From Callorhinchus milii (taxonomy: Eukaryota): a stretch of DNA of 64,000 nucleotides. Under the pieces are notes generated by a model. The model was not told the origin of the DNA and made no database searches. It worked only from the letters and a program-made list of their open reading frames with translations. Shown here one piece after another: positions 39,418-41,722 of this stretch (position 1 is its first letter; each line of letters begins with the position of its first letter). Location: positions 15,748,001-15,812,000 of the forward strand of contig NW_024704757.1 in NCBI RefSeq assembly GCF_018977255.1, in the 5' to 3' direction. The position numbers were made by a program, and so were the translations under genes.

Positions 39418-41722
39418 ATGTTTTCAGGTAAATCTTGATTTATTCTCCGAACGCACTGACTGAATTGCGTTATTTTTTCAAAGAGGAACATTTGTTTTCA
39501 GGCAGAGACGAGAGAGAGAGAGAGAGATTGACTGACTTCTCATGCTTGTTCAGGACACAGTTCACTGCTCATCACCGACCTCCCTCCCTCCCCCCAGATT
39601 AAGCCAGCGCTCTAAACCACTAAACTCCACCACCATTTAGAGGCACTTATGTTTTAATCTTTGTTTTCCAGACAAAACGAGTTTCTTGTTCTGGACTATA
39701 TTGCTGCTCCCTACCCACCCCAGGCATAATTCCTGCCCGATTTTAACCAGGCAGGAAGTACAGCCACTACTGTGGTGCCCAAGTTTGCGCTGAGTTTGCT
39801 AATCCCAATGATTCATTCACATGACGAAGAAGCCATATCCTGCCACCTGCTTCGTGTTTGCATGCTTGGCAACGTCACGCTCATCTGTGCTTACACCAAA
39901 TAATCCTAATAATAATAATCCTTGCATTTGATATAGCGCTTTTCACGTCGAGAGGACGTCCCAAAGCGCTTCACAGAACACACTGTAAAGTGAATTGACT
40001 GTATATTTGTGGGAAACAGCCGGTTAATGTTCTGCACCCAGGGGATTAATGTAAAAACAATTGCTTGGTTGAGAGAGAGTAGAACAACACTACCCCAGCA
40101 AGAGTAAGGGAGGGAATTGGGGAAAATTGGAAGATTTAGGAGAGAAAACATATATTGTACACAGGCTCTTTAAAGATGTTTGGATTTGTCATTTTTATCT
40201 TTGTGCTGTTTCCAGGACTTCTGCAATACGGGAGGATGCTTGAAATCATGATCAGAAGCAAAGGTAGTGCTTTTTAAACATCTTTGAACTAAAGTGTGAA
40301 GCCGAATAACAAACAGTCGTGGATTGAGGGACCAAACTGTTTTTTGACTGATTATTATTCTCCCCGGAAAGCGATTCACTAATCGACTAATAACTGGGTT
40401 CCTACTTCTTGCTCGATAAACACGTGGAGGCGTGTGGAGTAAGGAAACTTGCCTAATGTTTGGCCCTGCCCGGGAATCCAACCCTGTTCCTCTCGCTTGT
40501 GAGGCCAGCGCTCTAACCACTGAACTACACCACCGTTTAGAGACACTTATGTTTTAATCTTTGTTTTCCAGACAAAACAAGTTTCTTGTTCTGGACCATA
40601 TTGCTGCTGCTCTTTGTCAAGGTTTTTGGTGACTGTGATCCGAAACATTGTGAAAGTTGTGTACCAGAGTTTCCACTTGGGATGTTTGTGACCTGCACCA
40701 ACAAGAACCTAACTACGCTCCCCGATTTACCCATCAACGTGTACGAGCTCCGACTCAGTCACAACAAGATTCCTGCACTGAAAGCTGGAATGTTCGCTAA
40801 AGTTGACACCAAGAAGATGACGTTCCTTTATTTTGACCACAACTTAATCATTGAAATCCAAACGGACGCCTTTAAAAAGCTCGCCAAACTGCAATACCTG
40901 GACTTGTCTTACAACACACAGCTGAGCAGCCTGAACGTTTCAACCTTTTCCTGGCTGTTAGGTCTGCAGCACCTGAACCTTGAAGTCACGGGTTTAGTCC
41001 GTGTAGATCCAGGTGTTTTCCTGAAGCTCTCCGCACTGGAATGGTTACAGCTCTCTGGGAATCGACTCAAACATTTATCATCCAAGCTGTTTGGGGACGT
41101 AAGCAACCTCCAGAATTTGAACCTTTCGGCAAATGGTCTGCAGACAATTGAGACCGACCTACTCCACGATCTGAACCATTTGGTGAATTTAAGTCTAGCG
41201 GACAATTCTATTGCCACCATCCAGAATTACGCCTTCCAGAATTTGCCACTACTCAAACTTCTGGAATTAAACAACAACAGTTTGATTCAGATGGACATCA
41301 GACTGCTGAATCCACTGGTACATCTGACTTTCCTGAGGTTGGAAGGGAATCCTTGGGACTGCACATGTACAGCGGCCGACCTGTATAGTTGGCTCCAGGG
41401 TTTTGCCGGGAACGTGTCCGGGCCGCTTTGTTCTATTCCGGATTTTCTCGTTGACCAGGGTGCACTGGGAGACATCGCTTCCAAGTGTTATGACCGTTGC
41501 CCCAAGTTTCCTCCTGGGAAGACGTGCTTTTTGCCTCCTCCAACTGGTCTGACTCCAGTCGACATAAACAACCTCATCCTGGACTTCAGACACATGGTTC
41601 AGGCATGCATAGGGATCGGTGCCATTTCCCTTATAGTTGTGTGTGTGTTGCTGGCACATAGTGTATTCACTCGAGTTTGGAATCCAAGAAGCCTTTTAAG
41701 CGGAGAACACGATTTTGAGTGA
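39418..41722 (+). CDS. Reticulon-4 receptor (Nogo receptor)-like LRR membrane protein
   Basis: Main exon 40572-41722 is open: hydrophobic signal peptide, LRRNT, 8 LRRs plus a partial one, LRRCT (NPWDCTC..WLQGFAG..CSIP), Pro-rich stalk, hydrophobic segment [21 protein letters not shown] and a ~17-aa tail. Candidate micro first coding exon ATGTTTTCAG|gtaaat at 39418-39427 (phase 1) gives [17 protein letters not shown] at 42415-42420. Family assignment is from recalled RTN4R motifs. Confidence 0.8.

Follow-up and report, generated by a model that had tools for sequence, protein, structure and literature searches.

Genomic Locus and Gene Model

The stretch of Callorhinchus milii DNA analyzed here (assembly GCF_018977255.1, contig NW_024704757.1, positions 15,748,001 to 15,812,000 of the forward strand; 64,000 nucleotides, referred to as the window) contains a gene for a leucine-rich repeat (LRR) protein that resembles the Nogo receptors (NgRs, the RTN4R family). 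The gene order is NOXO1-TBL3-RNF151-gene-ACA64-RPS2, and the position of the gene between an RNF151-like gene, identified by Pfam, and RPS2, located by a motif scan, is as given in the preliminary description of this DNA, which had been made from the sequence alone. We consider it likely, with a probability of roughly 0.68, that the gene encodes an expressed type-I glycoprotein of an old orthology group, related to the Nogo receptors yet forming a separate lineage that is not orthologous to RTN4R, RTN4RL1, or RTN4RL2, and that this protein is a candidate receptor.

The terminal exon of the gene starts at 40572, directly downstream of a pyrimidine tract and AG, and contains an intact open reading frame (ORF) of 378 codons at 40586–41722(+). 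The coding part of this exon (40572–41722(+), including the TGA stop codon at 41720–41722) encodes a sequence 100% identical to RefSeq XP_007904279.1 (C. milii, "reticulon-4 receptor-like 1") over all 378 ORF residues, and in a word-indexed protein search it was 99% identical to UniProt V9KUM4 (C. milii, "Reticulon-4 receptor", 391 residues). A second C. milii RefSeq accession of the same name, XP_007904280.1, was returned by a cluster look-up. The gene is already predicted and automatically named in RefSeq and UniProt. The N termini of the RefSeq protein and of the UniProt protein (the latter MIRSKDKTSF) are encoded at 40236–40263, followed by GT, within a 47-nt exon at 40217–40263(+) that was delimited by translation, by its match to these N termini, and by RNA contigs. 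The ATG at 40236 opens the reading frame of this exon, with a second in-frame ATG at 40248, and the exon encodes MLEIMIRSK and ends in phase 1, one base into the following codon. The reading frame is intact, as originally proposed, but the protein is 392 residues in length, or 388 from the second ATG, and not ∼385. All searches described below used the large exon alone, or the database proteins by identifier, without joining the two coding exons.

Contigs of four sequencing runs from two studies, the RNA nature of which is presumed, were placed on positions 37000–42900. The joint 40263|40572 (aligned as 40261>40570, cut shifted by +2) was present in contigs of all four runs, with 47 contig letters upstream of the joint in three of them and 30 in the fourth (X6), and it removes a 308-nt GT..AG intron at 40264–40571(+). 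As these contigs do not contain the 308-nt intron, spliced RNA of the gene exists. The last exon is covered in 4/4 runs by contigs of 1305–1532 nt, and contig ends at 41903, 41933, 41934, and 42032 delimit a 3′-untranslated region (UTR) at 41723–42032(+) that reaches at least to 41933–42032. On the other side, the contigs stop at 40217, directly after a pyrimidine tract and CAG, and a contig of run X3 has 48 additional letters without placement. Consequently, the gene probably has one or more non-coding 5′ exons upstream of 40217, which would fit the existence of two RefSeq accessions (XP_007904279.1 and XP_007904280.1) for a single protein. Relative to the window, the contigs of the four runs show eight differences in coding sequence: three synonymous, four non-synonymous, and one stop-loss. 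The stop-loss, G>C at 41721, changes TGA to TCA, so that Ser-Met-Gln is appended ahead of the following stop codon; this variant occurs in three of the four runs and in V9KUM4, with the TGA at 41720–41722 being carried by the window and by XP_007904279.1.

The first coding exon had previously been placed at 39418–39427, with the proposal that its junction to 40572 be sought in RNA. This exon is rejected, as the database N termini are encoded at 40236–40263 and the 40263|40572 joint was found in every run; no joint from 39427 to 40572 was present among the 15 joints listed (234 further joints were recorded). The expected form of this exon, a tiny first coding part in phase 1, was correct for the segment at 40236–40263. 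A local duplication of ∼0.4 kb was observed in this region, where 39311–39708 resembles 40310–40608 at a spacing of 900–1000 bp. The copied parts include the end of the intron, its splice acceptor, and 37 nt at the start of the large exon, with 94% identity over a stretch of 94 nt. In the upstream duplicate, these amount to a pseudo-acceptor and a shortened beginning of the exon, and the proposed 39418–39427 exon falls inside this duplicate. Copies of an interspersed repeat are located at 39167–39363, 39758–40151, and 41728–42121, the last in the 3′-UTR of the gene; their summed contig depths are 10^3–10^5 in all four runs, and they generate many false joints. The intron itself holds a tRNA-derived repeat at 40461–40534(−) (Rfam tRNA, 29.2 bits) that resembles the head of a tRNA-derived short interspersed nuclear element. 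Further tRNA-like Rfam matches, all on the reverse strand, are found at 1975–2037, 12741–12805, 17241–17311, and 17406–17477, and the whole set scores 29–45 bits.

Upstream of the gene, the window includes a NOXO1-like exon with a weak Pfam match to the p47phox C-terminal domain (8669–9358(+)) and TBL3, with Utp13 and WD40 domains (∼15233–27524(−)). These are followed by the RNF151-like gene, recognized from Pfam domains and their order, with RING exons at 33518–33769(+) and 35294–35440(+) and a TRAF-type zinc finger at 35586–36218(+). Downstream, the H/ACA small nucleolar RNA ACA64 (RF01225) is found at 42717–42839(−) with an Rfam score of 42 bits (gathering score 35), on the strand opposite to the gene and RPS2, and contigs of depth 133–1446 end there. 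RPS2 was not found by Pfam in the 20 ORFs searched, but its exons were recognized from five short motifs at ∼46606–46785(+) and 47170–47340(+). The gene order of human 16p13.3 is presumably the same, and RNF151 and RPS2 are not known to flank an LRR gene there.

Architecture of the Predicted Protein

The predicted protein consists of a signal peptide, an N-terminal cap (LRRNT), nine LRR strands, a C-terminal cap (LRRCT), a short stalk, a hydrophobic helix, and a polar tail, and in this respect Pfam, AlphaFold, and hydropathy bear out the layout first described. The part of the signal peptide encoded by the last exon (40572–40630(+)) has an N-terminal hydrophobic maximum of 1.86, with cleavage predicted before DCD. 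The LRRNT (40631–40735(+)) has four Cys with C-x4-C-x2-C-x11-C spacing, conserved in every covering member of the orthology group described below. The nine LRR strands are encoded at 40736–41335(+), as judged from the AlphaFold strands, Pfam LRR_8, and a motif parse, and the Pfam domains found in the ORF are LRR_8 (4e-32), LRR_4, and LRR_1. The LRRCT (41336–41500(+)) has an NPWDCTC…C…C..C pattern; the domain is conserved in the group, and RTN4R is its best match. It is followed by a proline-rich stalk of 29 residues with one conserved Cys (41501–41587(+)), where the predicted local distance difference test score (pLDDT) is <50, by a predicted transmembrane helix (41588–41668(+); Kyte-Doolittle 2.62 over 19 residues), and by a putative polar cytoplasmic tail of 17 residues (41669–41719(+)) with a basic start, an RS-x-L motif, and an acidic end.

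An AlphaFold2 model calculated from a 7-row alignment has a mean pLDDT of 72, with values >88 in almost every block of residues 50–210 and <50 at residues 1–30, 282–330, and 366–378. The LRR strands of the model comprise residues 52–58, 80–82, 104–106, 129–131, 153–155, 177–179, 201–203, 225–227, and 249–251, spaced by 28, 24, 25, 24, 24, 24, 24, and 24 residues, and the model also includes a strand in the LRRNT, a helix in the LRRCT, and, for the predicted transmembrane region, an unbroken helix of residues 327–365. Repeat 1 is long, repeat 3 has 25 residues (strands 104 to 129), and in repeat 4 the ladder Asn is replaced by Thr (LNLEVTGL). Ten ectodomain Cys, four in the LRRNT and six in the LRRCT and stalk, are kept in every group member that covers them, and a GNV[ST]G glycosylation sequon in the LRRCT is common to all members. 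The residue between Phe and Gly of the W-L-Q-x-F-x-G sequence varies within the group, being Ala, Glu, or His.

Membrane Anchor

The C-terminal region was assessed by hydropathy in five full-length group proteins from three species, namely two C. milii forms, the protein P0002 from a sequence contig (see below), and both coelacanth copies. In all five, a hydrophobic 19-mer (Kyte-Doolittle 2.2–2.6) is followed by 19–25 mostly polar or charged residues; basic residues stand right after the helix, and the RS-x-L motif and acidic end are kept from chimaera to coelacanth. Signals for glycosylphosphatidylinositol (GPI) attachment normally end with the hydrophobic stretch, whereas the polar and basic tail of these proteins continues past the helix. 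The C terminus is for this reason read, from hydropathy, as a membrane-spanning anchor of type I that leaves a short tail in the cytoplasm, and not as a GPI signal, in line with the anchor initially suggested for the protein. The GPI anchor without a cytoplasmic domain that characterizes the RTN4R family was accordingly not seen by hydropathy. It can be argued that the hydrophobic segment is nevertheless a GPI-attachment signal and that the mature protein is lipid-anchored like NgR1–3, as this would follow the precedent of the family and as small residues (Gly, Ala, and Ser) occur within and ahead of the hydrophobic stretch. An exchange of anchors also has a parallel in nyctalopin, an LRR protein reported in an excerpt of PMC2235866 to have a GPI link in human but a transmembrane anchor in mouse. 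Set against the charged extension present in 5/5 proteins and its conserved sequence features, a GPI signal appears highly improbable.

Distribution and Conservation

When 1.84 billion representatives were searched exhaustively with HMMER, 34,648 proteins matched at E ≤0.001, and the best 150 of these score at least 189 bits. Multi-repeat proteins of 991–7,992 residues with 4–23 matched stretches make up 146 of these 150, and the NgR family, at ∼135 bits, is below the 189-bit level of the best 150 of the 34,648 matches. The other four are P0002 (78% identity, 655 bits), P0087 (45%, 315 bits, 390 residues), P0113 (45%, 264 bits, 294 residues), and a fragment, P0176. P0002 is a 384-residue protein from a Logan contig that is 77–78% identical to the C. 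milii protein. A cluster look-up identified P0087 as Latimeria chalumnae XP_006003157.3 ("reticulon-4 receptor") and a further coelacanth protein, P0207, as XP_064414797.1 ("reticulon-4 receptor-like 1"). P0113 is Protopterus annectens XP_043945050.1 ("reticulon-4 receptor-like"), and this lungfish model ends before the helix. Both coelacanth copies carry the helix and tail. As they are located on one 188-Mb contig and were formerly fused in an older RefSeq model of 884 residues (P0208), the two copies are probably tandem neighbors. P0176 is a third Latimeria fragment that skips the middle repeats.

These matches indicate a small, old orthology group composed of Callorhinchus, P0002, the coelacanth (with two diverged copies), and the lungfish. 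Between chimaera and coelacanth, the LRRNT (57–77% identity) and LRRCT (54–56%) are the best-kept parts, with 22–33% identity in the stalk, helix, and tail. No shark, ray, ray-finned fish, or tetrapod members were present among the matches listed in the exhaustive and word-indexed searches, which are blind to unannotated genes and to relatives of ∼50–55% identity within the 50% cluster of P0002. A lineage-specific, chimaera-only origin, one of the two options raised at the outset, is rejected, given the coelacanth and lungfish members. A pseudogene is likewise rejected, as the ORF is intact in three named species and in P0002 and spliced mRNA is present.

Relationship to the Nogo Receptors

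The closest characterized relatives of the protein were sought by sequence and by structure. In a phmmer search of PDB sequences (265 matches), the highest total score belonged to IGFALS (162.5 bits, from three stretches), and ranks 2–7 were occupied by six RTN4R sequences (132–135.7 bits), each matching as a single end-to-end stretch (query 33–300, chain 16–281), with RTN4RL2 at 112–115 bits. In structural comparisons with the predicted model, which had been recommended for the NgR1 ectodomain, NgR1 and NgR2 took the top ranks of both programs used. All 18 rows listed for ranks 1–27 of Foldseek were NgR1 or NgR2 (E 1.9e-15 to 1.9e-12, 32–34% identity, target TM score 0.77–0.85), followed by LRRTM2 (3e-12, 28% identity). 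Among the best 50 VIA-align entries, ranks 1–14 were again NgR1 or NgR2 (Z 31.5–32.5, root mean squared deviation 1.9–4.4, 263–279 residues aligned; for the collinear ectodomain, 271–279 of ∼284–294 residues), followed by LGR4 (Z 29.8). The LRRCT was also searched alone, since it cannot profit from repeat stacking. Its top eight PDB matches were all RTN4R (35.7–38.6 bits) or RTN4RL2 (26.5–27.7 bits), with SLITRK1 next at 24.5 bits, and a four-species LRRCT profile gave RTN4R as the top six, then LRRC26 (27.0 bits) level with RTN4RL2 (26.9 bits). The nearest Atlas cluster is "Reticulon-4 receptor", and RTN4R-type names are attached to 4/4 named RefSeq models of the group. The gene thus shares with the RTN4R family both the collinear LRRNT-LRRs-LRRCT ectodomain and an NgR-type LRRCT. 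In this gene the coding sequence is divided between a tiny phase-1 start and a single large exon, a form that presumably occurs in RTN4R and in IGFALS alike and does not discriminate between them. Because of the collinearity, the repeat number, and the C-terminal cap, NgR1 and NgR2 are read as the closest characterized relatives, as had been thought, with a distant link.

Several observations weigh against the NgR reading or limit it. Identity to NgR1 and NgR2 is just 32–34%, and the LRRCT lies in a region modelled with low confidence (pLDDT <50, residues 282–330). The LRRNT and LRR1–4 alone rank RTN4R 20th, at 58.9 bits, below IGFALS, LRRTM, TLR3 (78.5 bits), LRIG1, TLR13, LRRC15, and LRRC4B, so that no NgR-specific N-terminal cap or first repeats were found. 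A whole-length group profile does not discriminate between families in the PDB (LRRTM 174.7, RTN4R 173.9, and chondroadherin 169.8 bits), and the Atlas clusters of GP5, LRTM1, LRRC38, and LRRC26 have the same score, 0.96, as the nearest one. RTN4R, RTN4RL1, and RTN4RL2 sequences were absent from the 57 hits (3,147 candidates) of a word-indexed search with the exon-2 ORF, and no RTN4R-family protein from outside the group was among the best 120 of 794 hits of a 7-sequence profile. The variant tally among the four runs points to weak constraint within the species, though in a tiny sample. In addition, a shortened query of the LRRCT only returned no RTN4R-family sequence in its two hits among 57 candidates. 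The NgR-family motif DRLLLH was found in 0/315 retrieved proteins, and four other NgR-family motifs matched 1–56 of the 315 proteins each, none of which is a family member by length or name.

From such observations it could be proposed that the likeness to NgRs is generic LRR similarity and that the gene belongs to the LRRC26/38/52/55 or LRTM type, or to the IGFALS/LRRC15/GP5 group. The preference of the N-terminal half for IGFALS, LRRTM, and TLR3, the top total score of IGFALS, the tie between LRRC26 and RTN4RL2 in the LRRCT profile search, and the equal Atlas scores all agree with this proposal, as does the layout of a transmembrane helix with a short tail, which is that of the LRRC26 type; IGFALS is, moreover, presumably located in the same human region, 16p13.3. 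The lead of IGFALS, however, is the sum of several stretches (three in the full-length search and six printed for the N-terminal half), and neither it nor LRRC15, GP5, or CPN2 appears in the LRRCT match lists, whereas RTN4R is the best single collinear alignment by sequence and by structure and has an equal number of repeats. Nine strands with repeated partial stretches are not the long array of ∼15–20 LRRs of the IGFALS/LRRC15/GP5/CPN2 group, and they differ also from the six-LRR single-pass form of LRRC26/38/52/55, despite the helix and short tail; LRRC38 and LRRC55 scored 86 and 70 bits in a word-limited search, compared with 135 bits for RTN4R in the PDB search. Automatic naming by NCBI, too, arrived at RTN4R-type names for every named RefSeq model. 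A generic LRR origin is therefore regarded as unlikely. Less likely still, and indeed very unlikely, is that the gene is a strongly diverged elephant shark ortholog of RTN4RL1, or of RTN4R, as its automatically assigned names ("reticulon-4 receptor-like 1" in RefSeq, "Reticulon-4 receptor" in UniProt) would have it. The two coelacanth copies are mutually closest and carry different family names, and since sister copies are labelled in this way the names appear to be best-hit labels. The 32–34% identity to NgR1 and NgR2 also speaks against orthology, as does the RNF151-RPS2 locus, which is presumably not that of any of the three human genes. Further differences are the helix and tail, as opposed to the GPI anchor ascribed to the family in excerpts of PMC4030173 and PMC10268256, and the 29-residue stalk, as opposed to the long NgR1 stalk domain described in an excerpt of PMC4947863.

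Taken together, these data favor an NgR-related protein of a separate lineage, for which we use the term NgR-like and not NgR-family member, because neither the GPI anchor nor the long stalk, both of which define the family, was found. NgR1–3 presumably resemble one another far more closely than any of them resembles this gene. The lineage may be a sister family of the NgRs or a true fourth member. In one version of the latter reading, which we hold to be doubtful, the gene is a fourth NgR ohnolog that arose in the two genome duplications of early vertebrates; only chimaeras and lobe-finned fishes would have kept it, elasmobranchs, ray-finned fishes, and tetrapods would have lost it, and its membrane-spanning form would be either retained or invented.

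Proposed Function and Significance

As an NgR-like surface protein, the gene product would be a glycosylated receptor or adhesion protein, the curved LRR domain of which may, like that of NgRs, use its concave face to bind a ligand outside the cell, either a protein or a glycan. Its own helix would hold it in the membrane outside the GPI/raft route, and it would not be obliged to sit in rafts. Because the tail is too short for enzymatic signaling, any signaling or sorting would likely depend on a partner protein, or on a short motif in the tail, and not on a catalytic domain. A strict C-terminal docking motif is disfavored, since the stop-loss variant lengthens the tail by three residues.

In the literature searched, no study of a fourth or membrane-spanning Nogo receptor was found, and the names RTN4RL3, NgR4, and NgRH3 are not used there for such a gene. 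Searches combining the Nogo receptor with the elephant shark, or Nogo receptor phylogeny, GPI, and coelacanth, gave nothing relevant in that literature, in which the term "FRG motif" does not occur either. The gene can thus be called undescribed with respect to published studies but not with respect to databases, in which XP_007904279.1 and V9KUM4 exist; within the literature searched, it is an unstudied gene of ancient conservation for an NgR-like, probably transmembrane protein. With the gene already predicted in RefSeq and UniProt, the practical weight of the finding is limited. Nevertheless, an old, conserved relative that combines the ligand-binding scaffold of NgRs with its own helix and tail would widen the known forms of this receptor type, provide a natural comparison for anchor-dependent signaling, and be a further example of a vertebrate gene that survives only in chimaeras and lobe-finned fishes. 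Should the gene be a fourth ohnolog and its membrane-spanning form the ancestral one, the GPI anchoring and co-receptor dependence of NgR1–3 would be derived, and the protein would be a natural self-anchored NgR with which to test how anchor type shapes signaling.

Comparison with Known Systems

IGFALS, which has the highest summed HMMER score, differs from the C. milii protein in being secreted, in its ∼20 repeats, in a score assembled from separate stretches, and in an LRRCT that is not among the matches. The LRRC26/38/52/55 proteins (BK-channel gamma) have six LRRs. They share with the C. milii protein a signal peptide, LRRNT, LRRs, LRRCT, a single helix, and a short tail, and the LRRCT of LRRC26 is the best match to the group LRRCT profile outside NgR1 (27.0 bits), whereas the nine strands of the gene product and the scores of LRRC38 (86 bits) and an LRRC55-like protein (70 bits) set them apart. 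Nyctalopin (NYX) is likewise an extracellular LRR protein, and its species-dependent anchor, GPI-linked in human and transmembrane in mouse in the excerpt of PMC2235866, sets a precedent for exchange between the two anchors within an LRR lineage; it has 11–12 LRRs, belongs to another family, and scores 91 bits against the ORF and 152–158 bits against the group profile.

With NgR1 and NgR2, the protein has in common an LRRNT, eight to nine LRRs, and an LRRCT that are collinear over ∼270 residues, a 25-residue third repeat followed by a repeat without the ladder Asn, an LRRCT of the W-L-Q-x-F-x-G type, and additional Cys residues after the LRRCT. The motifs of the third and fourth repeats and of the LRRCT, pointed out from the start as RTN4R-like, align without gaps with those of NgR1 (LDLSYNTQL with LDLSDNAQL, LEVTGL with LDRCGL, and WLQGFAG with WLQKFRG), and the 25-residue repeat is present in the model. 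The differences are a helix and 17-residue tail in place of the GPI anchor, the replacement of the FRG arginine by Ala, Glu, or His in the group of the gene, an N-terminal half that is not specifically NgR-like, another chromosomal neighborhood, and LRRNT spacing of C-x4-C-x2-C, which is presumably not that of NgR1. NgRs are described as neuronal GPI-anchored LRR proteins (PMC4030173), and NgR1–3 are termed GPI-linked (PMC9121835). NgR1 itself is described as an array of eight LRRs capped at either end, with the GPI anchor borne by its C-terminal region, and as lacking a cytoplasmic domain and signaling through co-receptors (PMC10268256), with p75NTR or TROY bound by its stalk (PMC4947863). 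The C. milii protein, with a stalk of 29 residues compared with the long stalk domain of NgR1 (PMC4947863, excerpt), would present a similar LRR ectodomain on a membrane-spanning helix with a short tail of its own.

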